From contig JANHCV010000008.1 of the NCBI GenBank assembly GCA_025594325.1, positions 620,001 through 684,000 of the forward strand: a stretch of DNA of 64,000 nucleotides. Direction: 5' to 3'. How positions within the stretch are numbered: position 1 is the stretch's first letter; each line of letters begins with the position of its first letter. The notes beneath the pieces are model-generated. The model did no database searches. It saw only the letters and a list, made by a program, of their open reading frames with translations, and was not told the origin of the DNA. Made by a program: the position numbers and the translations under genes. This DNA is from Blastocladiella emersonii ATCC 22665 (Eukaryota; Fungi; Blastocladiomycota). Of this stretch, positions 1-38,383 are shown piece after piece.

Positions 1-153
1 GCGGATCACGGCCTGCACGACGAGCAGGAGCTCAGCGGTGTCGGCCGGCAGCTGCTGCGTGGACAAATATTGTGCAAGGTTTTCGCCGAGACTCCCGGTT
101 GGCAATGGCATAGCTCGCGCGAGTTCGTTGCATGGAGTGCGCGAGGTATTCAT
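1..153 (-). CDS. 5' start of a Gag-like ORF (mirror of 16370..), running out of the window
   Basis: Reverse complement of 16370-16522 (MNTSRTPCNELARAMPLP...). Confidence 0.55.
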   Translation of the reverse strand, partial: MNTSRTPCNELARAMPLPTGSLGENLAQYLSTQQLPADTAELLLVVQAVIR

Positions 154-254
154 GGCAAGGGTGGTGAGCGTGGTCGCATGTGGTGCGGAGAGCGAAGTTC
201 GGCGGCAGACGCGTCACGAGAAAATGAGCGCCGCGTCGAACCCATCAAGGCATT

Positions 255-368
255 GGAGGGTTTGCGGGGTTTAGCAAGCAAATCCTGAGCAAGCGAATCC
301 AGAGCAAAACGCGTGCAAATCCGGTCACGCGGGGACCGCGTGGGCCTCAGCCACCCCGGTGCGCCTTC
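255..368 (+). repeat. Left TIR of the Harbinger element
   Basis: Reverse complement of 6471-6584. Contains the hairpin CACGCGG-(N3)-CCGCGTG and short iterated TTGCTCAGGAT-like motifs. Confidence 0.9.
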
Positions 369-609
369 GTGTCGAGCGCGCCGGAACACGTCGACTCTCC
401 CCATCGTGCCTCGACCGAACGTACATCATGGATCATAATTATACTTGAGGCACCTAAACGCTTCGCGTTTGGTTGTCAATCGAGGGCTAAAGCCCCCGCC
501 ACGTATGGTGCACGACTGATGGAGGTGCTGTCGCGTGCGTCCCGCACAGGAGATTTAGGTGATCGAGCTATGGAAATCGTGCTATCGATGGATTAGATGA
601 TGGAATACA

Positions 610-3380
610 CTACGTTAATACTCTACTGTGTTTTCTGTTTCTTGGCGTTCTGTGAGCCTCCTCGCCTCCAGCACGTTTCTTGGCCAATCGCCGAAACCTT
701 GCGTTGAGAGCATCAGACGCGCGCTCGGCGACTAGCTTTTCAGCCGCGTGCTGGCGCGAGAAGAGAATCGCGTCGTCGAAGAGTTTAGCGATGCGCGGGT
801 TGCCTGGTGCGATGGCTGTACCTTGATCGAAAGCGGTCTTGGTCAGCTCGTCGAGCATCTGGAGCCGCTTGTCCTCGGCCACTGCGAGTGGATCCGGCTT
901 CATGGACTTGAGCACGGCTCTTGGGATCGGCTGAAGCACACACAGGTACTTTGAGCGACGAAGCCGCGATAACGCCACGTACAGGGAAGCGCCGCTGATG
1001 AGACGCTCCATGCCCGCGGGACGCAGATCTACCAGGGCGATGGCGTTCTTGGTCCCGCCTTGAACCCCGTGGACCGTCATGGCGAAGGCTGGCACCATCG
1101 GGTGCTTCTCGATGTGCGCGACGACATGATTAGGATACTTGCTCCTGTTGGTCTTGGTGTTGTTGTTGACACAGAGCGGGAGCGAATCCCCCGTTGTGCT
1201 GACGACCCGCTCTCGCGATGTGGAACCGCCCGCCATGTACAGGAAGTCCTTCCTCTCCACGGCAAGCGGGATGACCGTGTCAGGCCACGCGGCCGGCATG
1301 CCTGGGAAGCGAGGGCCACGAGGAGCGTCGGGCAGGTCGATCCACACGTTGAGTGGAGCGCAGGATGGCCGGTACATGTTGGACGCGGTTCGCGTGAACG
1401 TGGTTTCGGGCTTCCAGTCGATGTGGTGCACGACGCCAACCGCACCGTTCGCGCACCCCTTTGCTACGCACTGGTTGGTCTTGACGCGCATCTCCATTCC
1501 GACAAAGAGCTCGAGGATGGCCGGCAGTTCAGTCGTGGTTTCTGGCTCTCCTCCGAGGCGGAACACGTCCTTGTCGCAGATGGCGACGCGTTCACGCGTG
1601 CGGCGCCTATCACGCGGGCGCGTGATGCTGCCCTTGATCTGGTACACGATGCGGTTCGGGTTTGCTGCTGCGAGCCGCGTGTCGAGCAGGTTGAAGGCGT
1701 GGCGCGTGTGGTTGTCGGGCGCGATAACCGTGAGTCCGGGCTTCTTGAGGATCTCCTTGAGGACGTTGATGCCGTTTTCGTCGACCTGCTGCTGAAGCTG
1801 AGTGGTCGTACGCAAGTTGATCAGGTCGCACAGCGTGTCCGACGCCTTGACGAGGCGGAGCGCGTCCACTTCGTTGCCCCATGGTCGATCGTCAACAAAT
1901 CGGTTGCTCTTCACGAGACGAACAGCGCGTGTAGTGCGCCAGTACGCGACCTGGCCTCGATCCACGTGCTCGGGGACCGTCAATTGATTTGACGTCATGC
2001 GCAGGTAGAACGAGTCCGGCGCGTCGTTGAGCACGGCGGGCACCTTGTACAGGGCAGTTCCGTTGACGGGAGGCAGCTGTAAATGATCGCCAGCGAGCAT
2101 GACGATGCACCCGCCGAATGGTTCGTCGCACCGCCGCAGGAGGCGCAGGTTCGCGTCGATACGGCCGAGTAAAGTCGCGTCGCACATGGAGAACTCGTCG
2201 ATGACGACGCCGAGACGTCCTTTCCACGCGATGACAACCGCAGGATCGGTACGCAAACGGGCCACGTCCGGGCTGTTTTTTTTTTTTGGCCTTAGCGAAA
2301 AAGAGAACGCGGCGTGGATGGTCGTACCGCCAATGTTGGCGGCCGCGATCCCGGTCATGGCCATGACCATGAGGCACTATTCCCGGTTCCAGGACGCGAG
2401 AAAGTATCGGATCGCATCGACGACGCGCGACTTGCCCGTGCCGCCCGAGCCGGTGAGGATGATCGGCGTCCGGTCCTTGCTCATGGGCGGGAGGGCCGCG
2501 GTGCCGACGACATGTTGGACGTCGTCGCGGCCCAACAAGATCACGTTCTGCTCGGCCGAGGCCGCAGCGTCTGCGATACCCGCGTTGCCGCCGATGAAAG
2601 TGTCGATGAGCGGCATGAGGAAGAGCACGAACGCGCGGTGCTGCTCTTCGTTGAGGTTGAACTTGAGCGAGACCTGCGCGAGGCTCGCGTACGCGGGCGT
2701 GTGCACAGTGCGCTGCTTCTCGTCGCTCCACTCGTCGCCGCGTGTGTCGCAGGCAAAGTTGCTGATCGAGTCCGCGGCCTTGGTGACGAGGAACCGCGCG
2801 CGCGCGTCAGGATCCGTTGGCGTGGTCGTGAAGGCGCTGCGCCAAACGTCGACGGCTGGTCCGAGTTCTGGTTCGGGCACGTCGACGGCCATTTACGGGT
2901 CGATACCATGCTGAGATGTGTTTGTCGAGGCTCCAGATGGCACTGCGGGAACAATACCGATCATGGGCGGCTGCCCTGGCCCGGGAACGACAGGTACGGC
3001 GCCGACATCCGCAGTCGGATGACCTTGAGCCGCGGCAGCGCATAGTTGAGCCATGATCTTCTTGACGTCAGTCGGCGAGATGGGTGTCTCGAGGTACGGC
3101 GGCGGATGCGCGGCGTTGACACCGAACGGCTGCACGTCGGGGAAGAGCAGGGTGCCCATCATGCCGTGGCCCATTCCAGGGATCAGCGTAGAGGTCACGC
3201 TCTTGATGCGCTCGAGGTTCGCCTCAGTTTCGCCGTTGTCCGCCAGGATGCCCTCCACGTCCGAGTTGACGATAGTCGGGTCGAGAGCAATGTCGTTCTC
3301 CGACTGACCGACGACGCCAAGCACGGGTCCGGCTCGCGCAACGCTGACGGCACCGCCGCGGCCGCGGTTCCTCTGCGACG
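610..3380 (-). pseudogene. PIF1-family (SF1B) helicase of the Helitron element, copy L; two in-frame stops, 5' truncated
   Basis: Motifs LNEEQ, TGSGGTGKS (Walker A), MTGIAAANIGGTTIH, IDEFSM, AGDHLQLPPV, AFAMTVHGVQG, YVALSR. ORFs 2893..3582, 2377..2892 and 610..2370 share one frame, separated by TAA and TAG. Confidence 0.88.
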
Positions 3381-4189
3381 TGAACGCGTCGGACTCGTCA
3401 GAATCCGACGACGACCCGGGCTTCCCCGGCGACGAGGCCTTCACCTCGGCAGGCGTGCCGCACACGATGAAGGGCATGCGGGCCGAGCTCAACGAGGCTA
3501 CGGAGGTGTACCACGAGTGCATGCGCGACGGCTGCGAGAACTTTGTCAACAACCTCGCCGCGCACCAGGCCGCCCGCGCCACGGCAAACGGCGTCGCATC
3601 TGGCGCCGCTGGTCACGGTGTGCAGCAGGTCGCCGCCTCGATTGCCGCGGAACCCGCGGCGCAGCAGCTCACGATCCAGCAGCCCGTCGACATCTCGGCC
3701 GCCGTCGTCTCGCCCGCCGCGGCGCCCGTGACGCAGGAGCACGCGATCCAGCCACTCGCTGTCGTGTCGCCCGCCATCAACTCGCCCGCCAACACCAAGA
3801 ACGCCGGCGGCAAGAACACCGGCACCAAGAAGTACGGCGGCTTCCCGAGCTGCGCGGACCCCATTTGGACTCACTCGTTCATCGCGATCGGCAGCATCGA
3901 CAAGATCGTCGTGGGGGTGCCGGACTCGAACTCCGTGTCGGTCGGGTGCGACATGGAGGACGCGGCCGCAGCTGCGGCTCCGACAACCGCGGCGCTTGCG
4001 GCGTGCACGCCCCCCGCCATCGGTGACGACCAAGCCGGTGTCCCGACGTCTACCGCCAACGCGACGAAGCGCACGGCGGCGACCGCCGCCGCGGCCGCCG
4101 AGGAGGAGCACGAGGAGTGCGTCGTCAACGACGAGCATGAGGCGCAGCCCAAGCGGCGCCGCAGCGGCCGCCTGTCCTCGTCGACCTGA
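3380..4189 (+). CDS. Unknown low-complexity ORF inside the Helitron, antisense to the helicase; probably a 5'-truncated fragment
   Basis: 269 aa with strong G/C third positions, an Ala-rich linker and a C-terminal basic NLS-like PKRRR. Begins at GTG back-to-back with the helicase frame. Confidence 0.5.
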   Translation: MNASDSSESDDDPGFPGDEAFTSAGVPHTMKGMRAELNEATEVYHECMRDGCENFVNNLAAHQAARATANGVASGAAGHGVQQVAASIAAEPAAQQLTIQQPVDISAAVVSPAAAPVTQEHAIQPLAVVSPAINSPANTKNAGGKNTGTKKYGGFPSCADPIWTHSFIAIGSIDKIVVGVPDSNSVSVGCDMEDAAAAAAPTTAALAACTPPAIGDDQAGVPTSTANATKRTAATAAAAAEEEHEECVVNDEHEAQPKRRRSGRLSSST

Positions 4190-4597
4190 TGCACTCGCTC
4201 CCGCCCCGACTCTGTTCATTCCCCTCGCGCAGACTCGCGCAGACTCTTGTTTCCTCCCACACAAAGATATACTTTTCGTTCTCCTACGTTCACATCGCTC
4301 CGATCCTCTTGAACTCAGAAGCTCGCGAAGCACGCGAGTCGGTGCAACGCGCTCCGCTCGCCCTTGAGTGGTTGGCGCCGCGCGGCGCTTCCGCGGGTTG
4401 GGCCGAGGCCGATTACGTGCAAGGCCAGGACGCGTTGCGCCACAGCAGTCACATGAGAAACGACGCGTCTGTCACGCGTTTTTGGGTCGCTCACGTGGAT
4501 CGCGCTCACGTGAGCGTCGGCACCCTATCCGGCAGCGACCCGGTCTAGAAAGAGGGCTTTAGCCCTCGATGGACTCTTTCTTGCTGCAATAGATCTC

Positions 4598-5735
4598 ATG
4601 AACGGCCAGCTTGCTCCTCAGTTCGCGCCGCCCGAGGTGGTCCAACTTGCTCAGGCGCTTGTGCGACAGCGGGAGCAGCGGGCGCTGCTGATGCACCAAG
4701 CGCGCGTCGCCGCGCTCCTTGCCCCTCGCCCAAAGCCTCACGGCAGGCAGATGTGACGACAGCAGCCGTTTGTTCTTGACGAGTTCAATGACCGAGACTG
4801 CTGGGCCAAGTTCCGCTTCCAGCGCGACGACATCCGCTACCTCGCGCACCAACTACTGCCAGAGTATATCGTGTTGGATGTCCGCCACGCACCCGTTCAC
4901 TGTGAAGTCGCGCTGTGCGTCCTGCTCCGCCGCCTCGCGTATCTGTGCCGACTTGGTGATTTATGCCCAATCTTTCCATACGATGGGTCGGTGCTCTCGC
5001 GGATCATAAACACGACGCTCCGCCAGATCATCCAGACCTGGTCGCACCTTCTGACTATCCGCGTTGAGGCGATGCCGCCACGAGCGCTGCAGCAGTTCGC
5101 TGCTGCGGTCCATGCTTCCGGGGCTCCTGTACAGCACTGTATCGGCTTTCTTGACGGCCCCATCAAGTGTATCGCTCGTCCGGTGGCGATAACGCGGTTC
5201 AGCGCAACGTTTACACGGGCCGCAAGCGCGTTCATGGTCTCACAGTGCAGGGCGTCATGGCGCCAAACGGTCTTTTTATCGATGTTCGCGGCGTGTGGCC
5301 GGCCTCGTTCCACAACGCCAACGTTCTTCGTCGCTCCCAGCTTCTTGACCGCCTTGCACAACTCCCTCTCGCACCGGGCGGTCGGCCATACTTTCTTTAT
5401 GCTGACTCGGCGTACCCCCGTGGGTCCGACCATCCTGACGCCGCCCCGTGGTCGCAACCTGCCCGCTGACCTTGCTGCCTACAAGCGTCGCATGTCCGCT
5501 GCGCGTGTCCGTCGAGTGGGGATTCGGCATGGTCCTGAAGGACTGGGCCTTCTTGGACTACGTCAGGAACAACCAGCTTCACATGCACCCGCTCTGCGAT
5601 CTCTACTTCGCCGCATTCCTGTTCTCAAACTTGAAGACATGCTTGTACCGGCGCAACATCATCACGGACCATTTCCAGCTGGTTCCGCCCACCGTTGACG
5701 CGTACCTGGCGGGACTGGTGTCTCTCGAAATTTGA
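4598..5735 (+). pseudogene. PIF/Harbinger (DDE_Tnp_4, HARBI1-like) transposase pseudogene
   Basis: FRFQRDDI, ALCVLLRRLAY, GFLDG (D1), YTGRKRVHGL, LYADSAY (D2), RVSVEWGFG (E), PPTVDAYL. In-frame TGA at 4754 and two frameshifts (about 5180 and 5450-5500). Confidence 0.9.
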
Positions 5736-5804: not shown

Positions 5805-6377
5805 TTACACAAAAATCGCGTCATGCGGCAGGCGCGCGAGAAGCGCGGCCTGCGCCTGCATGAGGGGCGGGCCCATGTTGAGCAGGGCGGCGAGGTGGGC
5901 GGCGCGCTGCAGGTCCGACAGGGCCGGGTCGATGACTTGGGCACCTTGACACTCTAAGCGGTGCGACGCTTCGAGTACGGCAGCCACAAGCTCGGTCGGG
6001 ACCTGGTTCGAGCACAGAACGTGGTACGTCGAGACCGCGTAGGGCAGCGCAGCGCCGGCCGGCTGGTGGTAGTAGTGCAGGGCAACAGCGTGATGCGCGA
6101 TGGTCACGGCCATGTCGACTCCCGGCGGGGCGCCGTCGTTGAGGGTGTTGCGGCCACCGCGCCCGCCGCCGATGTGCAGCACAGGTCCTCCCACGTTGAG
6201 GACCAGACCGCCGCCGAGTCCGGCATGGGGCGCGGACACCGTGGTCGGCGAGATGCCCGGGGCCGGGATTAGCGCTGGCTGCGCGTGACCCGGTCCGTGC
6301 TGCTTTGGGTACGCGAGGCTGAGCGGCAGCGGCGGCGGGCAGCTGGACGCCATGACGGAGTCAAGAATGCATTGCAT
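5805..6377 (-). CDS. Second (accessory) ORF of the Harbinger element; no Myb/SANT motif recognised
   Basis: 190-aa ORF convergent with the transposase and inside the TIRs, the position of the Harbinger DNA-binding ORF. Confidence 0.4.
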   Translation of the reverse strand: MQCILDSVMASSCPPPLPLSLAYPKQHGPGHAQPALIPAPGISPTTVSAPHAGLGGGLVLNVGGPVLHIGGGRGGRNTLNDGAPPGVDMAVTIAHHAVALHYYHQPAGAALPYAVSTYHVLCSNQVPTELVAAVLEASHRLECQGAQVIDPALSDLQRAAHLAALLNMGPPLMQAQAALLARLPHDAIFV

Positions 6378-6470: not shown

Positions 6471-6584
6471 GAAGGCGCGCCGGGGTGGCTGAGGCCCACG
6501 CGGTCCCCGCGTGACCGGATTTGCACGCGTTTTGCTCAGGATTCGCTTGCTCAGGATTTGCTTGCTAAACCCCGCAAACCCTCC
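6471..6584 (+). repeat. Right TIR of the Harbinger element
   Basis: Inverted match to 255-368; direct match to 16155-16268; followed by ATT. Confidence 0.9.
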
Positions 6585-6732
6585 ATTAAACTATATTTCG
6601 CGAAACCGACATCACTCTGGCATCGCACAGCCTTCGTCAAAGAACGGTTCGAGGAGGAGACGCAACCGCTCCTGACTATTCGATCCAAGATTACAAACCC
6701 GCTTCATTCCGATCTTTCTCAGAGCTCATCAA

Positions 6733-8283
6733 TCACCGGCACAAGCAGCCGAAGGATCCGCGCTCGGTTTTGCGCCTCCAACTTCCGGACCCTCTCAAGT
6801 ACATGCCGCGCCAGTTGGACCGTGAGCGGAGCCAAAAGCGCCTTGGACAAGACTTGGCCGTGTCAACTCGCTCCGATTCCTGCTTGAGCTGCCGCCAGTC
6901 GATCCTCATGAGGCGCATTGCGACAGCGACCGTCTCAGATAACGCCCGAGGATGTATGAGAAGTGGGCACACGTGAAAGGTGTGGAAGCGGCAAGACGGA
7001 GGGCAAAGGTCGACAAACCGTGTACAGAAGCAGCACCCGGGTTGCACCGACAACATATTCGGCTCAACGCGATACGATGGGAACGTGGTCTGTGCGAAGG
7101 AGGCACTCATTTCTGCAACGTTGCCGGCCGGATCCCACAAGATTGCGTAGAGATGTTTTGGTTTCGGCCTCAGACAGATGAGAAGCCTTTCGGCGAAGTT
7201 GGTCTTGATTGGCCACGTCCGCTCAAGCGCGCTTGAGTACCCAGGCGCGGCTTCCTCGAGCAAGTCATGAAAGCGTGCATAGAAATCGGTGATAAGCATG
7301 CCAGGCGTTCGCGCCAGGCCGAGCCAGCGAGCGGCCCAGTCGCGCCGCGCTGGATCGGCTGGATTAATTGAATCGAGGAAGATGCGCTCGGCCTCTGCGT
7401 CCGACGCGTCGAAGCGAAGAAAGACCGAGTAGACATAATGTACCGTCCGCGTCGCGTTCCAGCTTGATGCGAGAAGTGCGGTTGCAAGCGAAACGGGGAA
7501 CGGGGAGCAGTCGGGAGATGACGCGATGCGCCACAGCGAGGCAAGGAAGTCGTGCGGGTCGTTGGTATCCAACAGATCCGTCTGATCAAGCTGCCGAAGC
7601 CGAGGGCCAAACTTGTCAAGGTGACGCCGCAGTGATTTAAGGTCCATATGTGAAATTTCGGGCAGGTGCTCCGTAAGTTGCGCAAAGCCCTCATGGCGAG
7701 GCAAATGTACGGCAAACCTTGAGCCGGGAGAAGGAGCGCGTGCACAATTGCGAAGCACAGCTGTAGAGCTTGTGACGTCCGCGTATGACACGAGCAGGGG
7801 ATGGGCTTCAGTCGTTTGGGTCGCCAGATGGGCCTGCTCAAGGTCCACTGGATTACGCGCCGTCAAAGCGCCGTTGGAAGAAGATGACTCGAGATGCTTC
7901 ACAGCAGGCGTGTGTTCGATCACAACGTTGGCCACGCCCGACCTGGTAGCCAGCCGCTGCGGCTTGGCAGCACCATGAGTAGGCTCCAAAAGTAGCCGCA
8001 GCCGCAGACGAAGCTGTATCGACTCGAGGCGCACCCTCAAGAGATCTTTCAGCGACTGCTCGTGCTGCTCCGCCGGCACCGGCAAGTCAAGCGCAGAGTC
8101 CGCGGGGTTCGATGAGAGGCAAAATTTGCTTGACGCCGTGCTTCCGCGGGCTGGCACAGACTTGCCAGATAAATTGCATAAAGTTTCATGATGATTCATT
8201 GCGAGCTGGATGTGGGATACGAGTCGACGCTGAGTGCTGTTCGTGCACGCGTCCCCCCTGTTCTCACGAAGCAACTTCCCCAA
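6733..8283 (-). CDS. Gag-like protein B with extended CCHC knuckle; C-terminus possibly frameshifted
   Basis: WLGLARTPGMLITDFYARFHDLLEEA...IKTNFAERL resembles the retrotransposon Gag C-terminal capsid signature. Knuckle CCFC-X13-H-X4-C. Homologous to 16370..18094 and 10597..11200. Confidence 0.6.
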   Translation of the reverse strand: MGKLLRENRGDACTNSTQRRLVSHIQLAMNHHETLCNLSGKSVPARGSTASSKFCLSSNPADSALDLPVPAEQHEQSLKDLLRVRLESIQLRLRLRLLLEPTHGAAKPQRLATRSGVANVVIEHTPAVKHLESSSSNGALTARNPVDLEQAHLATQTTEAHPLLVSYADVTSSTAVLRNCARAPSPGSRFAVHLPRHEGFAQLTEHLPEISHMDLKSLRRHLDKFGPRLRQLDQTDLLDTNDPHDFLASLWRIASSPDCSPFPVSLATALLASSWNATRTVHYVYSVFLRFDASDAEAERIFLDSINPADPARRDWAARWLGLARTPGMLITDFYARFHDLLEEAAPGYSSALERTWPIKTNFAERLLICLRPKPKHLYAILWDPAGNVAEMSASFAQTTFPSYRVEPNMLSVQPGCCFCTRFVDLCPPSCRFHTFHVCPLLIHPRALSETVAVAMRLMRIDWRQLKQESERVDTAKSCPRRFWLRSRSNWRGMYLRGSGSWRRKTERGSFGCLCR

Positions 8284-8403
8284 GCGGTCACGCCAGCCTC
8301 ACCTGATATCGAAACGCGTCGATTGCATTTGGAGACGATTTTCTTTTGTCTCACTCAACGTGAGCCAGCTCGTTTAACTCCAATACTCTACAAACCGATT
8401 TAT

Positions 8404-9666
8404 TCATGCTCGGCCGCGCGAAGCAAGCCGCGGCTCAAATCGACGCGACTCCACCATGGCGTAGTCGCGCGCCTCTTCTTTTGAGTAGTGCGCTGGGGCC
8501 CGCTCCATGAAATGAACCAGCACCAGGACCTTGAAGATGTGAGTAGCGCGTTCGCCGACAGGCTCGATACGCTGCAACTGGCCGAGCATGGCGCAAGCAA
8601 GCCGAAGCTCCCGATTTTCGCAACGCGCTTCGAGTTTGCGCGAAAGCTGACGGAGCAGGCCAACGAGTTCGCTGTCTAATCGGTCAACCTCGGCCACGAA
8701 ACGAAACTTGGGCGGGAGCGGAACCGCTGGGCGGGCGCGTGTGCTCAGCGTCCGGAGCGCCATCTGGATGGTCACGGCCGCGTTCACCGGGTTCGTGACG
8801 CGATGGCATCGCCCATCGTGGTGAGGAATCGAATTACGATGTTGAGGTTTGAGTGCCTCGCGCATATATGCGCGGCAGAAGTCGCAGTCGGCGCTGCTGG
8901 TTGAGAGTGAACGAGACCGGGACCCAGATTGGGCGCCCTGGATTGGATTGGGTAGGTTGTTTCTTGGGAGGAGCAATCTCGGTGGAGACCTGGATCGGGA
9001 GTATGGGCCGTGCGACCCCGAGCTGCTCCTATCGTGACGCCGACTGCATGGAGAGCGGCTGGGAGACCGGTGGGAACGACGAGTGGAGCGAGTGCGGAAG
9101 CGAGAACTCGAGCGTTCGCGACGATGAGCGGGTACGCGAGGCGGTGAGCGGGACCGTGAGCGAGAGCGCGCGTATCCTCTTCCTCGCAACTTTGTTGCGT
9201 CATCGGCAGCTTGATATTCTTGATGATGTGAGGTAACGCTGCTCTCAACGAAGCCAAGCAAACGCTCGACCGACTGCAAAGACAATGAGATAGCGGCGAA
9301 TGTCGACTGAGCACTTGCAAGGTGTGTTATAATCGGCTGTACACAGCGGCCGAGCAATGTTACGCGGCATAAATCAAGCCGGCGAGCCATAGCAACGAGA
9401 GTCGCATCATGTTGAAGCTGGCGCAGCGCCGCGCGACCGTCGGGGAAGCGACCTGATTTCAAAGTTTCCGCGACTCGGGCCTCTGCATCGTCGAGCATGA
9501 TTTCATTCATGTTTTCATTCGCGTTGCATGGAGTCTTCATTGTTTCTTGCGTGGTCCCGCGTCGCGGCGAGTAGGACAAGGCGGACTTGGCACGGACGCA
9601 CCACTTGACGCTTATCAACCTTTGACACCGCTGCTGGTCAGCTGCCCGCGATTTTCCGCCGCGCAC
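8404..9666 (-). CDS. RS-rich protein C with extended CCHC knuckle (Gag-like family)
   Basis: RSRSRSRSPPR tracts, then CDFC-X17-H-X4-C, then TIQMALRTLSTRARPAVPLPP, which is similar to ORF 9973..10548. Confidence 0.55.
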   Translation of the reverse strand: MRGGKSRAADQQRCQRLISVKWCVRAKSALSYSPRRGTTQETMKTPCNANENMNEIMLDDAEARVAETLKSGRFPDGRAALRQLQHDATLVAMARRLDLCRVTLLGRCVQPIITHLASAQSTFAAISLSLQSVERLLGFVESSVTSHHQEYQAADDATKLRGRGYARSRSRSRSPPRVPAHRRERSSSRFRTRSTRRSHRSPSRSPCSRRHDRSSSGSHGPYSRSRSPPRLLLPRNNLPNPIQGAQSGSRSRSLSTSSADCDFCRAYMREALKPQHRNSIPHHDGRCHRVTNPVNAAVTIQMALRTLSTRARPAVPLPPKFRFVAEVDRLDSELVGLLRQLSRKLEARCENRELRLACAMLGQLQRIEPVGERATHIFKVLVLVHFMERAPAHYSKEEARDYAMVESRRFEPRLASRGRA

Positions 9667-9972
9667 CCACTCTCGCGCAACAAACCAAGACTCTTGAAGG
9701 TTGTGTAACAGATACTGGCAAAGTTAGGAACAGGGCTTCTTCTCATGGCGACCATCGATCTGACCGCCGTTGACACCCAAGGGAACTGGCTCGAAGAGGC
9801 GAGGATGTATGCAGTCAGGGACGTGTAGTTCTGTCGTCAGCTCCCGAATCGAGGCGGGTTGAAGGAGAGATGATGAGTGAAATAGCGTATATTGGCGCAG
9901 CGGGAGCGCGGTGGGTTAGAGAGACGGTCGCGGACGGAACACGCAAGATCAGGTGGTGGATCACCACTATCA

Positions 9973-10548
9973 TCATCGCATGAATGATACGTAACAGGTG
10001 TGCTGTAGAGCGGATCGGGCAGTGCTGAGCCCAAGCGCGCTCACCATGCCGTACAGTTTGTGGTGGATCTGCTTGGCCCGCAGCATGGCCAACCCGATTC
10101 GCGCCATACCGCGCAGTCCGGCTGACGTGACCCAGTGCTCGCGCGTCTCACACGACGGCTCGAGCCCCCGCGAGAGGTCGAGCACGTAGTCGGCAAGCGT
10201 CTTGTCCGCTTTGCCCGGATGCGGACGCGATCGTGGTGGCAGGACCTGCGGCCGCGCTGCGCGGGATAGCGACCGGAACGCGGTGTGGATCGCCATGGCC
10301 GCTTTCAGCGCGCTGGCGAGGCGTTCACGCAGCACGGCGTCGTGCTGTTTGACGCGCGGCAGCGAACGTAAAAGCGAGTGCTGGGCGAGTAGCGCTTCGC
10401 AGTAGCGACACTTGACGTCGCGCGTGGCCGGCGATGTGGTTGGGCTAGGCGACCTGTTGCTCGACAAGGGGTTGTGCGGCGAGCTGAGGTCTGCAGCGGA
10501 CGCGTCCTCGAAAAATCCGCGCGGCGCATTTTTTGGCCAGCTTGTCAA
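9973..10548 (-). CDS. Paralog D of ORF 8404..9666, shorter; last knuckle Cys replaced by Arg
   Basis: CRYC-X18-H-X4-R (CGT codon, one change from TGT); AIHTAFRSLSRAARPQVLPP matches ORF C. Confidence 0.5.
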   Translation of the reverse strand: MTSWPKNAPRGFFEDASAADLSSPHNPLSSNRSPSPTTSPATRDVKCRYCEALLAQHSLLRSLPRVKQHDAVLRERLASALKAAMAIHTAFRSLSRAARPQVLPPRSRPHPGKADKTLADYVLDLSRGLEPSCETREHWVTSAGLRGMARIGLAMLRAKQIHHKLYGMVSALGLSTARSALQHTCYVSFMR

Positions 10549-10596
10549 TCCGAAAACGCTGTAACCATGATTCCATTTTAATTGTCATTTCTTCTC

Positions 10597-11200
10597 TCAG
10601 AGCCCGTCAATCACGGGCCCCAGTATTTGAACCAGCCGCTGCCGATCGGCCAGGACCAGCTTAAAGATCGCTTCCAGCACGCACCGGCCTGGGTAAACCG
10701 CGGCCGGGTACAGGAACCGTTCGCGGATGTGCGCGAGAGTGCGCTCGAAAGAAATGTCAAACCGACCGTTTGCCTCCCGCTTGAACTGCGGCCAATCAAC
10801 ACCAACAGCCCGCATGGCCACAACCACCACCTCAGCGAGCGCGTACGGATGAACGATTAGCGGACAGTTGTGGCGATCGTGGATGCGAAAAGCTGGAGGG
10901 CACAGGTCAGCGAACCTGTAACAGAAGCCGCAGCCAAGGCGCGCGGTGGTGGGGGACGGGCAGCGTGTACATGGCCGTTGGGGAAGGGGAACGCGACGCG
11001 AACCAGAGTTGCGCCGACGTGTGAAACGGTAACGGCCGGATCCCACGCATGCTTGAACAAGCTCTTCGGTTTCGGGCTTAGCGCGCTGTGCAGTCGCTTC
11101 GCGAAGCCCAGCTTAAACGTCACGACAGCGCAACAGCTGGCGATAGAATCATCCTCGGCAGGGCGAAATTCATCGCCAAAAGTGGTGCCGACATGTTTTT
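10597..11200 (-). pseudogene. Gag-like family copy E, 5' truncated and frameshifted
   Basis: FAKRLHSALSPKPKSLFKHAWDP (ORF 10857..11399) and CGFC-X13-H-X4-C...IVHPYALAEVVVVAMR (ORF 10597..11046) align with ORF B in two frames. Confidence 0.7.
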
Positions 11201-11209
11201 TGATGGTGT

Positions 11210-11837
11210 CAATATTTGCCACATCCGAATCACTGAGGTTGGCGCCGCTGCCCTTGCCAAGGCCACGGTCGAAAACGGAACCATTCGCAAGGTGGTGCTC
11301 GGTCCTTGCGATATCACGTTCCCAGTACTGCGCGCGCTGCGTCTGCCAAATGTCCCGGATCTCACAACGCTGGACCTGTCGAGGAACTGGATCGGACACG
11401 GTGCGGTCGCCCCAGCACGTAGCTTTTCGTCAACGGCAGCACACTTAACAGACAGTGACGATGACATACTCGACACCCCATGCTTTCCGCCCGGCCTCCG
11501 CGCGCTTGATCTCAGATCGTGCCACTTGCGCTTCCGCGAAATCGCGCAACTTGTGCACCGCTTTCCGCCTGGCCTCGCCATCTTGTGTCTCTCGAACCAT
11601 CCGCTTGCCGACGCGGGTGTTGCCGAGCTTGCACACCATCTTCCGGCCGCCCTTGAGGACTTGAACCTCGCTTATACCAGGATCACAGATACAGGCATCG
11701 CCGCTATCATGTTGCGACTTCCTCAACGCCTCACCAGTCTTGACTTGAGCGGAAATACGGTCACTGACGCGTCCTTGGACGTGATTTTCAACAACTTGCG
11801 GCCCAATCTCACGCAGCGCACGCAGCTCAAGACGTGA
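11210..11837 (+). pseudogene. Ribonuclease-inhibitor-like LRR protein fragment, 5' truncated
   Basis: LTTLDLSRNWIG, LRALDLRSCHL, LEDLNLAYTRITDTGI, LTSLDLSGNTVT. No N-terminal domain; abuts Gag-like copy E. Confidence 0.75.
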
Positions 11838-12333
11838 ATGACGAGAATGGGTGGTGACGGCAAAAACAAGGAGTTTGTCAGTGAGTTCCATCGCCGAGTT
11901 CCTGACGGGCTCAAACTGATCATGTGTCGCTGACAGGAACGACGTCAGTCAAATCGAGGGCTAAAGCCCTCTTTCTAGACCGGGTCGCTGCCGGATAGGG
12001 TGCCGACGCTCACGTGAGCGCGATCCACGTGAGCGACCCAAAAACGCGTGACAGACGCGTCGTTTCTCATGTGACTGCTGTGGCGCAACGCGTCCTGGCC
12101 TTGCACGTAATCGGCCTCGGCCCAACCCGCGGAAGCGCCGCGCGGCGCCAACCACTCAAGGGCGAGCGGAGCGCGTTGCACCGACTCGCGTGCTTCGCGA
12201 GCTTCTGAGTTCAAGAGGATCGGAGCGATGTGAACGTAGGAGAACGAAAAGTATATCTTTGTGTGGGAGGAAACAAGAGTCTGCGCGAGTCTGCGCGAGG
12301 GGAATGAACAGAGTCGGGGCGGGAGCGAGTGCA

Positions 12334-13143
12334 TCAGGTCGACGAGGACAGGCGGCCGCTGCGGCGCCGCTTGGGCTGCGCCTCATGCTCGTCGTTGACG
12401 ACGCACTCCTCGTGCTCCTCCTCGGCGGCCGCGGCGGCGGTCGCCGCCGTGCGCTTCGTCGCGTTGGCGGTAGACGTCGGGACACCGGCTTGGTCGTCAC
12501 CGATGGCGGGGGGCGTGCACGCCGCAAGCGCCGCGGTTGTCGGAGCCGCAGCTGCGGCCGCGTCCTCCATGTCGCACCCGACCGACACGGAGTTCGAGTC
12601 CGGCACCCCCACGACGATCTTGTCGATGCTGCCGATCGCGATGAACGAGTGAGTCCAAATGGGGTCCGCGCAGCTCGGGAAGCCGCCGTACTTCTTGGTG
12701 CCGGTGTTCTTGCCGCCGGCGTTCTTGGTGTTGGCGGGCGAGTTGATGGCGGGCGACACGACAGCGAGTGGCTGGATCGCGTGCTCCTGCGTCACGGGCG
12801 CCGCGGCGGGCGAGACGACGGCGGCCGAGATGTCGACGGGCTGCTGGATCGTGAGCTGCTGCGCCGCGGGTTCCGCGGCAATCGAGGCGGCGACCTGCTG
12901 CACACCGTGACCAGCGGCGCCAGATGCGACGCCGTTTGCCGTGGCGCGGGCGGCCTGGTGCGCGGCGAGGTTGTTGACAAAGTTCTCGCAGCCGTCGCGC
13001 ATGCACTCGTGGTACACCTCCGTAGCCTCGTTGAGCTCGGCCCGCATGCCCTTCATCGTGTGCGGCACGCCTGCCGAGGTGAAGGCCTCGTCGCCGGGGA
13101 AGCCCGGGTCGTCGTCGGATTCTGACGAGTCCGACGCGTTCAC
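12334..13143 (-). CDS. Unknown ORF inside Helitron copy R (identical to 3380..4189)
   Basis: Identical translation to the 3380..4189 ORF. Confidence 0.5.
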   Translation of the reverse strand: MNASDSSESDDDPGFPGDEAFTSAGVPHTMKGMRAELNEATEVYHECMRDGCENFVNNLAAHQAARATANGVASGAAGHGVQQVAASIAAEPAAQQLTIQQPVDISAAVVSPAAAPVTQEHAIQPLAVVSPAINSPANTKNAGGKNTGTKKYGGFPSCADPIWTHSFIAIGSIDKIVVGVPDSNSVSVGCDMEDAAAAAAPTTAALAACTPPAIGDDQAGVPTSTANATKRTAATAAAAAEEEHEECVVNDEHEAQPKRRRSGRLSSST

Positions 13144-15913
13144 GTCGCAGAGGAACCGCGGCCGCGGCGGTGCCGTCAGCGTTGCGCGAGCCGGACCCGT
13201 GCTTGGCGTCGTCGGTCAGTCGGAGAACGACATTGCTCTCGACCCGACTATCGTCAACTCGGACGTGGAGGGCATCCTGGCGGACAACGGCGAAACTGAG
13301 GCGAACCTCGAGCGCATCAAGAGCGTGACCTCTACGCTGATCCCTGGAATGGGCCACGGCATGATGGGCACCCTGCTCTTCCCCGACGTGCAGCCGTTCG
13401 GTGTCAACGCCGCGCATCCGCCGCCGTACCTCGAGACACCCATCTCGCCGACTGACGTCAAGAAGATCATGGCTCAACTATGCGCTGCCGCGGCTCAAGG
13501 TCATCCGACTGCGGATGTCGGCGCCGTACCTGTCGTTCCCGGGCCAGGGCAGCCGCCCATGATCGGTATTGTTCCCGCAGTGCCATCTGGAGCCTCGACA
13601 AACACATCTCAGCATGGTATCGACCCGTAAATGGCCGTCGACGTGCCCGAACCAGAACTCGGACCAGCCGTCGACGTTTGGCGCAGCGCCTTCACGACCA
13701 CGCCAACGGATCCTGACGCGCGCGCGCGGTTCCTCGTCACCAAGGCCGCGGACTCGATCAGCAACTTTGCCTGCGACACACGCGGCGACGAGTGGAGCGA
13801 CGAGAAGCAGCGCACTGTGCACACGCCCGCGTACGCGAGCCTCGCGCAGGTCTCGCTCAAGTTCAACCTCAACGAAGAGCAGCACCGCGCGTTCGTGCTC
13901 TTCCTCATGCCGCTCATCGACACTTTCATCGGCGGCAACGCGGGTATCGCAGACGCTGCGGCCTCGGCCGAGCAGAACGTGATCTTGTTGGGCCGCGACG
14001 ACGTCCAACATGTCGTCGGCACCGCGGCCCTCCCGCCCATGAGCAAGGACCGGACGCCGATCATCCTCACCGGCTCGGGCGGCACGGGCAAGTCGCGCGT
14101 CGTCGATGCGATCCGATACTTTCTCGCGTCCTGGAACCGGGAATAGTGCCTCATGGTCATGGCCATGACCGGGATCGCGGCCGCCAACATTGGCGGTACG
14201 ACCATCCACGCCGCGTTCTCTTTTTCGCTAAGGCCAAAAAAAAAAAACAGCCCGGACGTGGCCCGTTTGCGTACCGATCCTGCGGTTGTCATCGCGTGGA
14301 AAGGACGTCTCGGCGTCGTCATCGACGAGTTCTCCATGTGCGACGCGACTTTACTCGGCCGTATCGACGCGAACCTGCGCCTCCTGCGGCGGTGCGACGA
14401 ACCATTCGGCGGGTGCATCGTCATGCTCGCTGGCGATCATTTACAGCTGCCTCCCGTCAACGGAACTGCCCTGTACAAGGTGCCCGCCGTGCTCAACGAC
14501 GCGCCGGACTCGTTCTACCTGCGCATGACGTCAAATCAATTGACGGTCCCCGAGCACGTGGATCGAGGCCAGGTCGCGTACTGGCGCACTACACGCGCTG
14601 TTCGTCTCGTGAAGAGCAACCGATTTGTTGACGATCGACCATGGGGCAACGAAGTGGACGCGCTCCGCCTCGTCAAGGCGTCGGACACGCTGTGCGACCT
14701 GATCAACTTGCGTACGACCACTCAGCTTCAGCAGCAGGTCGACGAAAACGGCATCAACGTCCTCAAGGAGATCCTCAAGAAGCCCGGACTCACGGTTATC
14801 GCGCCCGACAACCACACGCGCCACGCCTTCAACCTGCTCGACACGCGGCTCGCAGCAGCAAACCCGAACCGCATCGTGTACCAGATCAAGGGCAGCATCA
14901 CGCGCCCGCGTGATAGGCGCCGCACGCGTGAACGCGTCGCCATCTGCGACAAGGACGTGTTCCGCCTCGGAGGAGAGCCAGAAACCACGACTGAACTGCC
15001 GGCCATCCTCGAGCTCTTTGTCGGAATGGAGATGCGCGTCAAGACCAACCAGTGCGTAGCAAAGGGGTGCGCGAACGGTGCGGTTGGCGTCGTGCACCAC
15101 ATCGACTGGAAGCCCGAAACCACGTTCACGCGAACCGCGTCCAACATGTACCGGCCATCCTGCGCTCCACTCAACGTGTGGATCGACCTGCCCGACGCTC
15201 CTCGTGGCCCTCGCTTCCCAGGCATGCCGGCCGCGTGGCCTGACACGGTCATCCCGCTTGCCGTGGAGAGGAAGGACTTCCTGTACATGGCGGGCGGTTC
15301 CACATCGCGAGAGCGGGTCGTCAGCACAACGGGGGATTCGCTCCCGCTCTGTGTCAACAACAACACCAAGACCAACAGGAGCAAGTATCCTAATCATGTC
15401 GTCGCGCACATCGAGAAGCACCCGATGGTGCCAGCCTTCGCCATGACGGTCCACGGGGTTCAAGGCGGGACCAAGAACGCCATCGCCCTGGTAGATCTGC
15501 GTCCCGCGGGCATGGAGCGTCTCATCAGCGGCGCTTCCCTGTACGTGGCGTTATCGCGGCTTCGTCGCTCAAAGTACCTGTGTGTGCTTCAGCCGATCCC
15601 AAGAGCCGTGCTCAAGTCCATGAAGCCGGATCCACTCGCAGTGGCCGAGGACAAGCGGCTCCAGATGCTCGACGAGCTGACCAAGACCGCTTTCGATCAA
15701 GGTACAGCCATCGCACCAGGCAACCCGCGCATCGCTAAACTCTTCGACGACGCGATTCTCTTCTCGCGCCAGCACGCGGCTGAAAAGCTAGTCGCCGAGC
15801 GCGCGTCTGATGCTCTCAACGCAAGGTTTCGGCGATTGGCCAAGAAACGTGCTGGAGGCGAGGAGGCTCACAGAACGCCAAGAAACAGAAAACACAGTAG
15901 AGTATTAACGTAG
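13143..15913 (+). pseudogene. PIF1-family helicase of Helitron copy R with in-frame TAA (13628) and TAG (14144)
   Basis: Same motifs as copy L. ...HGIDP*MAVDV... and ...WNRE*CLMVMAMTG... are in one frame. Confidence 0.88.
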
Positions 15914-16154
15914 TGTATTCCATCATCTAATCCATCGATAGCACGATTTCCATAGCTCGATCACCTAAATCTCCTGTGCGGGACGCACGCGACAGCACCT
16001 CCATCAGTCGTGCACCATACGTGGCGGGGGCTTTAGCCCTCGATTGACAACCAAACGCGAAGCGTTTAGGTGCCTCAAGTATAATTATGATCCATGATGT
16101 ACGTTCGGTCGAGGCACGATGGGGAGAGTCGACGTGTTCCGGCGCGCTCGACAC

Positions 16155-16268
16155 GAAGGCGCACCGGGGTGGCTGAGGCCCACGCGGTCCCCGCGTGACC
16201 GGATTTGCACGCGTTTTGCTCTGGATTCGCTTGCTCAGGATTTGCTTGCTAAACCCCGCAAACCCTCC
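16155..16268 (+). repeat. Orphan, transduced copy of the Harbinger left TIR
   Basis: Mirror of 255-368; matches 6471-6584 with 2 mismatches. Confidence 0.9.
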
Positions 16269-16369
16269 AATGCCTTGATGGGTTCGACGCGGCGCTCATT
16301 TTCTCGTGACGCGTCTGCCGCCGAACTTCGCTCTCCGCACCACATGCGACCACGCTCACCACCCTTGCC

Positions 16370-18094
16370 ATGAATACCTCGCGCACTCCATGCAACGAAC
16401 TCGCGCGAGCTATGCCATTGCCAACCGGGAGTCTCGGCGAAAACCTTGCACAATATTTGTCCACGCAGCAGCTGCCGGCCGACACCGCTGAGCTCCTGCT
16501 CGTCGTGCAGGCCGTGATCCGCAAGGGCATGGATCTGCGCGCGACGCACGTTGGCCTTTCGCTAGAGTTTCGGTCACAATGCAATTCGGACGAGTCCGCT
16601 AAATCCGTTCGCTCGCGTGCGACGGTGCTTGGGATCGCGATCGCAGACCTCATCAAGCTGTGCACCTCGATTGAGCATCACTGCCGCACACGCTCTCTTC
16701 TCGGTTCTCTGACCTCGCTCTCCAAGCTGTCACTTCCGCTTCCGTTCCTCGAGCAAGCACTAGCGGCAGCCCCCGGCCCCGAACCTGGCGTCACCCTCGC
16801 GGCACCCGAATCGTCGCACCGGCGATCGTATGACACACGCTACCAGAAGCTGATTCGCGAAGAAGGGCCGCTGCTTGGCTCCCGCGGCCAAGGCAAAGCT
16901 CGGTTCGTTCCCGACTCGCACGAATTTATTGAACGCTTGTGCGATCTTGTGCCCGACATCCCGCTTGGCCAAGCGCTCTACCTCTGCCGCTTCAATGTTC
17001 CCAAACCCGTCTACCACGTCCTAGCCGTTTTTCTACGCGAATCGGCGAACGACAGGGAGGCGCACCGCGTGTTCCTCAGGGCCGCCGACCCGTACTGGCA
17101 CAGCGACTGGGTCAGACGGCTTCACCGGCTCAAGCCGTGGCCGGGCAGTACCGTCGGGGAGTATTTTGCCGAGTTCCACGCGCTGCTTGCCGAGGCGATT
17201 GATATTGACGACCCCATGATCGGCTCGGAGCGGGCGATCAAGAACGTTTTCTTTGACAAGCTGTACACCGCGCTCGGGAGTTGCGCGGATCCGATCTTCG
17301 CCATGGCCAATGATCCGTCCGCGACGATGGCTGCTGCGGCCACCCGTTTCGCTTCCCTCGCGATTCCGCACTTGGCGACGCCAGTTCAGTCCCCGACCGC
17401 TCCCCATGCTTCGTTCATCAGCCCAAAAGGCAGCTGCGTGTTCTGCGCAGCACTCGAGCTTCATCGCCCCGAGGCCATCTCTCACACCGCTCGGGTGTGC
17501 AACAACATGCACCGCGCGAATCACTTTGGCATCATGCTCGCCGAGGGTTTGTTCCTGGCAAACGTCACGGCTCCACGCAATGTTTGGAGGGGAGCTTGCC
17601 CGACGCCCGACTTGATCCAGGCCTTGATGGACTTGCACCTCCAGGTCAGCGGTCGCGCACGCTCAATGCCCCCAGGTGACGGCCAAGTCAAGGTCATGCG
17701 CTGCGCCGAGCTAATTGGAGCGCTCTTTGCGCTCCTCACCAAGAATATCTCGTTCGAGCCTCCGATTTGGGCAGTCGACGCGGTGAAGAACATTTGGCAG
17801 GCCGCACATATCCTGTCCGTCAAGTCAAACATGAAAATCTGGCTCAGTTTGTTATGTTTCGCACATCGCGCCATAAATTTTGATTGCTCTCCCATCTCCC
17901 GCGTCCACAAACGGAAAACGCACGGCATCGCGCACAGATGTATTAAAACTTCGCACGGATGTATGAAAAACATGGGGGACAGCGTAGGGCAACAACGACA
18001 CTTCACAGGAGCTCCAAGAACGCAATCACCCGGATTGTCAACTTCCCGTCAACAAACGCTTTCGGGGGTGAGCAATTGTAAGCCCAACGGTTGA
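16370..18094 (+). CDS. Gag-like protein A with extended CCHC knuckle; the last ~90 aa may be run-through
   Basis: LHRLKPWPGSTVGEYFAEFHALL...SERAIKNVFFDKL resembles a Retrotrans_gag-like signature. Knuckle CVFC-X12-H-X4-C. Intronless; no pol downstream. Confidence 0.62.
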   Translation: MNTSRTPCNELARAMPLPTGSLGENLAQYLSTQQLPADTAELLLVVQAVIRKGMDLRATHVGLSLEFRSQCNSDESAKSVRSRATVLGIAIADLIKLCTSIEHHCRTRSLLGSLTSLSKLSLPLPFLEQALAAAPGPEPGVTLAAPESSHRRSYDTRYQKLIREEGPLLGSRGQGKARFVPDSHEFIERLCDLVPDIPLGQALYLCRFNVPKPVYHVLAVFLRESANDREAHRVFLRAADPYWHSDWVRRLHRLKPWPGSTVGEYFAEFHALLAEAIDIDDPMIGSERAIKNVFFDKLYTALGSCADPIFAMANDPSATMAAAATRFASLAIPHLATPVQSPTAPHASFISPKGSCVFCAALELHRPEAISHTARVCNNMHRANHFGIMLAEGLFLANVTAPRNVWRGACPTPDLIQALMDLHLQVSGRARSMPPGDGQVKVMRCAELIGALFALLTKNISFEPPIWAVDAVKNIWQAAHILSVKSNMKIWLSLLCFAHRAINFDCSPISRVHKRKTHGIAHRCIKTSHGCMKNMGDSVGQQRHFTGAPRTQSPGLSTSRQQTLSGVSNCKPNG

Positions 18095-25535: not shown

Positions 25536-26043
25536 ATGGAAACAGAGACGGTCGCAACTTTATCAACGAACAATACGCCGACGCCACGTCGCCCGCGGCG
25601 TGGATCCCCGTCGCGGCGCCGCACACGGGCGCTGTGATCGCGCGGTGCCCCGACTCGTCGCCCGCCGACGTCGACGCCGCTGTCCAGGCCGCCAAGTTGC
25701 GGTCGCCGCCGCCGCTACGACCTGGCTGGCACTGACACGCACACACGTAGCAGGCCGCGTTCGGCCCGTGGAGCGCGCACGCTTAAGGACCGCGCGCAGA
25801 TCCTGCTGCGGTACCACGCGCTGATCACACAGTACGCCGACGAGCTCGCCGACCTGATTGTCAAGGAGCACGGCAAGACCAAGGCCGAGGCGCTCGGCGA
25901 CGCGGCCAAGGGCAACGGGACGGTCGAGTACGCCTGCTCGCTCCCGCAGCTCGCTGCCGGGCGTATCATGGGGGTGTCGCGCGGCGTCGTGTGCCGCGAC
26001 CTGCGCGTCTCGCTCGGAGTCACTATCAGCATTGTCCCCTTGG
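25536..26043 (+). pseudogene. N-terminal fragment of a methylmalonate-semialdehyde-dehydrogenase-like ALDH
   Basis: NFINEQY, DVDAAVQAA, RAQILLRYH, ELADLIVKEHGKTKAEALGD, VEYACSLP, LGV..SIVP. Frameshifts and a damaged intron; truncated before the catalytic core. Confidence 0.8.
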
Positions 26044-26177
26044 GTTGTGATCGGCGACTTGCTGGGGGCGTGACGATGAACAGGGCGACTCGTTTCAGCG
26101 GCTTCCCACGCCACGCCGAGAGCGACACGTCCTCCGCGCCCGATGTAATCCTCGGTCGCTACTTGGATGAAAAACTC

Positions 26178-31831: not shown

Positions 31832-31904
31832 TATAATATAATATAATCATTACAAGGTAAGTTGCCATGCGCGGAGCTACCCCGAGGTCGGAACGCCCCG
31901 GAGC

Positions 31905-38100: not shown

Positions 38101-38383
38101 GTCAGCTGGAAGTAGTAGCTACACGATAGGTGTGGGTCAGCCATGGGTCGAACACGGCACGCGGTGCAAGCAAGTCGTACCGGCGCACGTTGGTCTCAAA
38201 CTTGAGCCGCGCGGCCGCCGCCGCCGCGTCGTTGGCGACGGGCGCGTCCTGCAGGCTGTGGAACAGGTTCGGGTCGGACAGGACGGCCTGCAGGCCGGCG
38301 GACCGCGAGGTGCGGGCGACGGCGGGGCTGGCGCGCGGCGGTTCGGGCGACGGGACGCCGGGCGGCGGGGTTGGCGTTGACAT
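35127..38383 (-). CDS. HECT E3 ubiquitin ligase, UBE3A/E6AP-like, with N-terminal AZUL zinc motif
   Basis: After one intron near 38120-38177: RYYFQLTVGCGDPTCTTKLC. FSFFNYPFLF, LKKPLKIKF..EEGMDQGGVQKEFF, DSDRLPTALTCF (catalytic Cys), AIENAKGFGLV*. Confidence 0.93.

Follow-up and report, generated by a model that had tools for sequence, protein, structure and literature searches.

A Blastocladiella-restricted family of tandem zinc-motif genes whose origin is not demonstrably a retroelement

A 64,000-nucleotide stretch of the Blastocladiella emersonii ATCC 22665 genome (positions 620,001 to 684,000 of contig JANHCV010000008.1, hereafter the window) holds five related open reading frames (ORFs), genes A to E, marked by a Cys/His motif of the form C-x2-C...H-x4-C. 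What are these genes, and where do they come from? An earlier note on this DNA had proposed that they are a lineage-specific, diversifying gene family descended from Gag proteins. We judge, at a probability of roughly 55%, that A to E belong to a genuine protein-coding multigene family found only in Blastocladiella, with an origin that is not demonstrably a retroelement. Their lineage restriction and tandem diversification held up under analysis; their descent from Gag did not.

The host is the zoosporic fungus that the earlier note had suggested, since a 1005-amino-acid (aa) HECT/AZUL ORF (window positions 35127-38144) matches H9P43_006739 of B. emersonii ATCC 22665 at 100% identity. The location of this gene puts the window at about 620-684 kb of the contig and shows it to run in the orientation of the record. 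The assembly of this strain was built from PacBio HiFi reads and comprises 21 contigs and 34.27 Mb (PMC9730499).

Modular genes in same-strand arrays

All five genes were recovered where the earlier note had placed them, none of them annotated in GenBank (Table 1). The note had put all of them on the minus strand, which is correct for B to E, but A lies on the plus strand, and the "donor" described at position 153 belongs to an identical second copy of its start, A'. This copy is 100% identical to the first 51 codons of A (tblastn, A aa 1-51) and is also matched by the hidden Markov model (HMM) of the family's N-terminal module. Gene E, described as an ORF at 10597-11200, is present but falls into two pieces in two frames, an ORF at 10597-11046 and a further piece in the other frame, which corrects its extent to 10597-11399.

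Relatedness among the five genes was only partly direct. BLASTP and tblastn found significant similarity between A and B (29% identity, 243 aa, E 1e-18), B and E (52% identity, 64 aa, E 2e-20), and C and D (35% identity, 148 aa, E 2e-12). No significant direct similarity joined A, B and E to C and D by the same searches, and hhalign gave E 0.03-0.08 over the motif span only. The link runs instead through exchanged parts. The N module of gene C is 56% identical over 134 aa (E 2e-32) to an A/B-type paralog frame in L003, one of four further loci that were fetched, and in protein P0013 an A/B core is followed by a C/D-type C domain (hhalign E 3.6e-5, 121 columns). Because modules are shared between the A/B/E and C/D types, we treat A to E as one family, within which matches between paralogs reach E 1e-18 to 1e-105.

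A full-length member has about 550-620 aa and follows a fixed order: a conserved start with a helical module of about 70 aa, an Arg/Ser-rich (RS) tract, the core, a linker, the zinc motif and a helical C domain. The N-terminal module can be aligned across A, B, C and the copies in the other loci. The RS tract that the earlier note had seen in gene C is real; it is strong in C and in many locus copies, reduced in A and B, and reaches 65-85% Arg+Ser per 40-aa span in about 10 of 32 open segments. This tract is disordered. The core, by contrast, is a compact unit of eight helices (about 190 aa) in which Asp, Phe and Trp columns are nearly invariant. Copies have lost parts as well as exchanged them: judged from its sequence, gene C is a family variant that lacks the core, and gene D is a 5'-truncated C-type copy.

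The state of the five window copies differs. Gene A looks intact from an ATG at the conserved N-terminus; its last ~75 codons have a non-coding look. Gene C likewise appears intact from an ATG at the conserved family N-terminus. Gene B likely starts at an internal ATG at this same N-terminus, and one frameshift moves its C-terminal module out of the frame seen in E and protein P0002. Gene D is probably a pseudogene. Gene E covers family-profile positions 95-289; the N module is missing, as is the first third of the core.

We searched for relatives with HMMER in 1.84 billion representative proteins. The profile built on the A/B/E core gave 17 matches at E up to 1e-3, 16 of them genuine, and all 16 are hypothetical proteins of B. 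emersonii ATCC 22665, in agreement with the lineage-specific family that had been proposed. The Allomyces, Sorochytrium and chytrid proteomes in that set gave no family match. Fourteen of the relatives are encoded solely on contig JANHCV010000008.1, one on a 5.1-Mb contig and one on two contigs. A profile of the C/D tail found a single relative, P0018 (H9P43_006750), which adjoins the A/B-type P0010; it is the closest relative of gene D and retains the Cys that D has replaced by Arg.

Other searches returned little. Pfam gave nothing for A to E at E up to 1. A sequence search of the PDB with A, B, C and four family profiles produced noise or RS low-complexity matches only, the weak profile matches being confined to RS/RG tails of the splicing proteins DHX8, SmD1 and SRSF1. 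A word-based protein search with A came back empty; as an unannotated gene, A could not match even itself. Exact look-ups of five window ORFs found none on record because the gene models differ. Scans for tRNAs and Rfam families were empty.

The family extends beyond the window. Running the family HMMs over the open segments in all six frames of the window and the four fetched loci (146 kb in total), we counted about 29 units, mostly in same-strand tandem arrays, which agrees with the diversifying, tandemly arrayed family that the earlier note had described. The sampled arrays lie between 186 kb and 1.17 Mb of the 1.80-Mb contig JANHCV010000008.1 (Table 1), with spacers of about 0.2-2 kb, and a typical unit is a single open frame of 550-620 codons. 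Public gene models of the family are often too short: P0002 is annotated as 313 aa within a 562-codon frame, and the models of P0002, P0003 and others omit about 250 open, conserved N-terminal codons. P0001, seemingly a protein with three cores, is a GenBank model that fuses three adjacent genes via false introns (L004:8001-11458). Unreliable models were also seen at L001:10001-10942 and elsewhere.

Could these be chance open frames in GC-rich DNA, with a coincidental motif? GC content in the window is 58-72%, antisense ORFs longer than 300 aa are numerous, and the 3' end of ORF A carries no codon-position signal. Against this, at least 10 copies keep 550-620-codon frames open from a conserved ATG despite synonymous divergence (dS) of 0.44 to above 1. 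The ratio of nonsynonymous to synonymous divergence (dN/dS), a comparison that the earlier note had proposed, was below 1 between copy pairs (0.23-0.80, Nei-Gojobori); these ratios are rough because most dS values exceed 1, and the least saturated pairs gave 0.38 (dS 0.69) and 0.57 (dS 0.44). In six-frame translation, the window contains 5 exact matches to C-x2-C-x(12-18)-H-x4-C, of which genes A, B, C and E account for 4; 30 shuffled windows had a mean of 0.4 and a maximum of 2. Together with similarity between copies down to E 1e-105, the conserved start and confident AlphaFold models, these counts refute chance frames, to which we give practically no credence.

The zinc motif and the test of Gag descent

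The motif itself was accurately described in the earlier note, with loops of 12 residues in A, 13 in B and E, 17 in C and 18 in D, where Arg stands in for the last Cys. It was present in 18 of the 32 open segments of the window and loci, with a loop of 12 in eight, 13 in eight, 17 in one and 18 in one. The family form is C-x-F-C-x12/13-H-x4-C, with Phe before the second Cys in 15 of the 18 copies. These four Cys/His residues probably bind one zinc ion. The loop is closer to that of a classical zinc finger than to the x4 of a nucleocapsid knuckle: the spacing C-x2-4-C-x12-H-x3-5-[HC] of classical C2H2/C2HC fingers fits the eight of 18 copies with x12, while another eight have x13. Among the Pfam zinc-finger families, searched up to E 10, only B-box gave a match (E 0.18-0.49), and the zf-CCHC comparison that the earlier note had suggested gave no family match at E 1-10. 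In the AlphaFold model, the motif has a short helix at C-x2-C, its His lies on no helix, and no beta-hairpin-plus-helix (beta-beta-alpha) arrangement is formed.

The arrangement of parts is what makes Gag descent worth considering. A helical domain, a short linker and a C-x2-C...H-x4-C motif follow one another as capsid and nucleocapsid do, so that the core could be a capsid and the motif a stretched nucleocapsid knuckle, in a gene that lost pol, was domesticated and was then amplified. We modeled the relevant region with AlphaFold2, using family alignments of 19-20 sequences only. The model of A aa 146-500 is all-alpha with a mean predicted local distance difference test score (pLDDT) of 85.2 and a predicted template-modeling score (pTM) of 0.58, and the core alone reached a pLDDT of 91.2 and a pTM of 0.83. 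Its layout is a beta-hairpin and five helices, followed by a strand-helix element where conservation is highest and then two further helices.

Foldseek returned no match for either model at E up to 1e-3: the best E values were 0.55 and 0.35 in the PDB and 0.29 in BFVD. Retroviral Gag or capsid proteins were nevertheless the best named matches in three runs. With the larger model, a retroviral capsid chain stood at rank 47 in the PDB (E 2.1); with the core, the same capsid came at rank 2 (E 0.69, TM-score 0.33, root-mean-square deviation 16 Å); and BFVD gave two retroviral Gag entries at E 0.30 (probability 0.69, 262 columns) and E 1.4. All of these are non-significant (TM-scores 0.26-0.35, deviations 12-16 Å), and no Arc, PNMA2, PEG10 or Ty3 structure was among the matches. 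The earlier note had named exactly this outcome, no structural similarity to Gag capsid, as evidence against its own proposal.

Profile searches pointed the same way. No Arc, PNMA, PEG10, Ty3 or retroviral chain appeared even at E 10 when the family profiles were compared with PDB sequences, and no copy reached the curated cut-off of a Pfam Gag family (PF03732, PF14893 and relatives). An apparently promising case was P0001, which gave a match to PNMA (E 9e-5, 22.4 bits, cut-off 25) and one to Retrotrans_gag (E 0.033). We rejected the PNMA match since P0001 is the three-gene fusion described above; scanned alone, the relevant single copy gave PNMA at E 0.039 and 13.9 bits (cut-off 25), which is at chance level because about 40 proteins were scanned. 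About 25 other copies had no Gag-family match in Pfam.

Retroelement company was not seen either. The earlier note's observation that they lack pol and long terminal repeats (LTRs) stands. No reverse transcriptase, integrase or protease was found in the scanned window ORFs of at least 300 aa or in the called genes of the four 20-kb loci (decayed pol remnants were not searched exhaustively), so that the pol-linked relatives that the note had hoped for were not seen there, and no LTR-like direct repeats flank the family genes. A 115-nt repeat at 6471-6585 and 16155-16269 was considered as an LTR pair and rejected, its arrangement bracketing no gene in the manner of LTRs. This segment occurs a third time at 254-368 (98% identity); it is found immediately 5' of gene A and of A' and, in plus orientation, downstream of B as well. 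It may represent part of a promoter or a small mobile element.

Gag descent is thus not supported, and we consider it doubtful; the order of parts and the recurring weak Gag matches keep it under discussion. It would require an extremely diverged gag lineage, capsid and nucleocapsid together, that lost pol, gained the RS tract and a loop of 12-18 residues in place of 4, and multiplied into dozens of tandem copies, which we likewise hold to be unlikely. Our literature search found no paper linking Blastocladiella with Gag.

The inverted repeat, mobile neighbors and other window features

Genes B to E lie in the 7382-nt spacer of an inverted repeat whose arms are at least 4570 nt long and 100% complementary (Table 1). 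The inner ends of the repeat coincide with the 5' ends of the two copies of a helicase-bearing unit, and the arms run past the 3' ends of these copies into gene A. Because of this extension, the perfect repeat is either a very recent inverted segmental duplication, a product of gene conversion or an assembly artefact.

The helicase-bearing unit (4.1 kb) resembles Helitron2/Helentron elements. It contains a PIF1-like helicase frame at 12941-15913 that two in-frame stops interrupt, and a search for a Rep domain in it was negative. The 16-mer GGGCTTTAGCCCTCGA occurs 7 times, against 0.01 expected; inverted copies of it mark the 5' end and a point some 35 nt short of the 3' end, after which a short hairpin follows. 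Another Helitron-like 3' end at 29891-29968 abuts the 5' end of the next unit.

Table 1. Positions of family genes and neighboring features. Positions are window nucleotides, except for the arrays, which are given in kb of contig JANHCV010000008.1.
Feature	Position	Strand	Remarks
Gene A	16370..18094	+	Full-length A/B-type member; N module 16370-16804; eight-helix core, motif and C domain 16805-17863
Gene A zinc motif	17435-17500	+	12-residue loop
A' (second copy of gene A, start only)	1..153	-	In left arm of inverted repeat; cut by window edge
Gene B	6722..8283 (ORF 6733-8283)	-	A/B-type; N module present; core 6868-7662
Gene B zinc motif	6967-7035	-	13-residue loop
Gene C	8404..9666	-	C/D-type; N module, RS-rich tract, zinc motif, C/D-type C domain; without eight-helix core
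Gene C zinc motif	8806-8886	-	17-residue loop
Gene D	9973..10548	-	5'-truncated C/D-type copy; no N module; no ATG 5' of motif
Gene E	10597..11399	-	5'-truncated A/B-type copy; two reading frames, one frameshift
Gene E zinc motif	10864-10932	-	13-residue loop
Inverted repeat, left arm	1..4570		Truncated by window start; 100% complementary to right arm
Inverted repeat, right arm	11953..16522		Holds helicase-bearing unit and first 51 codons of A
Helitron2/Helentron-like unit (not family)	11953..16080	+	Inverted 16-mers at 5' end and near 3' end; 3' hairpin
Mirror copy of this unit	443-4570	-	
1.9-kb Helitron-like unit	29968-31837	+	Non-coding; 15-nt tandem array 31551-31760
Harbinger-type DDE_Tnp_4 transposase remnant	4600..5735	+	PF13359, E 2e-11; decayed, three frames, at least two frameshifts
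Leucine-rich-repeat gene fragment (family neighbor)	11400..11837	+	LRR_6, E 9e-12; abuts truncated 5' side of E
Window array	about 620-684 kb		B-E plus A and A'
L001 array	948-969 kb		6-7 units
L002 array	186-207 kb		3 units
L003 array	691-712 kb		5-6 units
L004 array	1,155-1,175 kb		8 units

With such surroundings, genes A to E might belong to a mobile element that has gone unrecognized, either as its ORF1 or as cargo of the nearby Helitron-like units, and be selfish and decaying. Helitron2-like units and the Harbinger remnant lie close by, PIF1 helicase genes stand beside 3 of the 5 sampled arrays, the third-codon-position GC content (GC3) of the family is low, B, D and E are damaged, and gene A was duplicated together with the helicase unit in the perfect inverted repeat. 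Same-strand tandem arrays with short spacers are not the dispersed insertions that such an element would leave, though, and no terminal repeats or flanks common to the paralogs were found. Cargo status was rejected because the terminal 16-mer flanks no family gene, and the helicases beside different arrays are not similar to one another, so that we also rejected them as parts of one element. Outside the inverted repeat there are no young copies (dS at least 0.44), and long frames remain open. A mobile origin is weakened by copies that are old, divergent and same-strand, that share no flanks or termini, and that show dN/dS below 1; we regard it as quite improbable.

Several other features of the window are repeated in the genome. 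A leucine-rich-repeat (LRR) multigene family (LRR_6/LRR_1, one member with FNIP repeats) has members at 25968-27815, 32579-34444, 47592-48941 and 11400-11837, with 70-89% DNA similarity in direct and inverted orientation. A 1.8-kb non-coding repeat at 53704-55541 is 96.8% identical to L001:15853-17667, in a family array 300 kb away; it contains no ORF and no Pfam domain and may be a non-autonomous transposon. At 42936-45593 on the minus strand lies a paralog of a chitin-synthase-type gene, with 71-88% DNA identity to L002:11157-17526, where that gene adjoins an A-like family member; the 525-aa window ORF at this place had no Pfam match. A 190-aa ORF at 5805-6377 on the minus strand (GC3 0.82), between the Harbinger remnant and B, also had none.

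A Blastocladiella-restricted family and its comparison with known systems

We return to a real, Blastocladiella-restricted multigene family. Over about 1 Mb of one contig it has multiplied into tandem arrays of same-strand copies, presumably by unequal crossing-over, and intact copies now stand next to damaged ones. Its evolution was probably of the birth-and-death kind, under relaxed purifying selection. Motif and composition suggest that the zinc motif and the RS tract bind nucleic acid, most likely RNA, and probably in the nucleus, and the helical core and C domain may mediate protein-protein contacts.

Some of our results weigh against this reading. The proposed function is drawn from motif and composition. 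The recurring retroviral Gag and capsid matches of the predicted structures (E 0.3-2), weak as they are, may reflect a remote retroelement origin. The GC3 of the family genes (0.62-0.76) is comparable to that of the LRR genes (0.69-0.76) and the helicase (0.75), with the HECT and ILVD genes at 0.92-0.95, and such low values fit low expression, foreign origin or decay. Finally, damage is seen in B, D and E, three of the five genes in the window.

In transposon-rich regions, zinc-motif families that are tandem and evolve fast usually serve conflict or recognition, and to our knowledge the Blastocladiomycota have barely been explored for such gene families. For the present one, Pfam, PDB and BFVD offer no assignable relatives, and its core, predicted with confidence, may represent a new fold. 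It occupies much of about 1 Mb of one contig, where GenBank shows only truncated or fused hypothetical proteins. A remote Gag link, if true, would extend multicopy capsid-gene domestication to early-diverging fungi, as the first multicopy Gag domestication in such a fungus and with a fold too remote for present searches; if not true, the family is a clean case of a motif-based Gag call failing structural testing.

The nearest comparison is with domesticated Gag genes. Three co-opted fungal gag genes, Crtg12-14, have been described as single-copy genes of Dikarya, with none in zoosporic fungi (Wang and Han, PMC8321522). Arc, PNMA, PEG10/RTL and Crtg12-14 resemble the Blastocladiella family in being pol-less, in having an all-helical domain that in some members precedes a Cys/His zinc motif, and in their lineage-specific histories. 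Domesticated Ty3/gypsy Gag genes, however, match Pfam Gag families and the capsid fold, whereas the Blastocladiella family does neither, and Crtg12-14 are single-copy where the blastoclad has dozens of tandem copies. At the level of the motif, the nucleocapsid knuckle C-x2-C-x4-H-x4-C shares the C, C, H, C ligands, the terminal x2 and x4 spacings and an aromatic residue within C-x2-C, but its loop has 4 residues compared with 12-13 in 16 of the 18 family copies and 17-18 in the C/D type.

Other zinc-motif proteins offer further likenesses. C-x2-C-x12-H-x4-C has the spacing of a classical C2H2 finger with Cys as the last ligand, as in the FOG-type C2HC variants. The family differs from such fingers in having no Pfam zf-C2H2/C2HC match, no hairpin-plus-helix around the motif in the model and a single motif per protein. 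SR-type splicing proteins such as SRSF7 and ZRANB2 carry both an RS domain and a zinc motif, and the family similarly combines an Arg/Ser-rich tract and a zinc motif in one protein. It differs from them in that no RNA recognition motif (RRM) or other known RNA-binding domain was matched in Pfam, similarity is confined to the low-complexity tract, and the core and C domain have no counterpart. From the KRAB-ZNF and SCAN-ZNF clusters, the Blastocladiella genes are set apart by unrelated domains and by a single zinc motif as opposed to finger arrays. In their genomic behavior the two are nonetheless alike, with same-strand arrays, birth-and-death evolution, fast divergence and transposon-rich surroundings.

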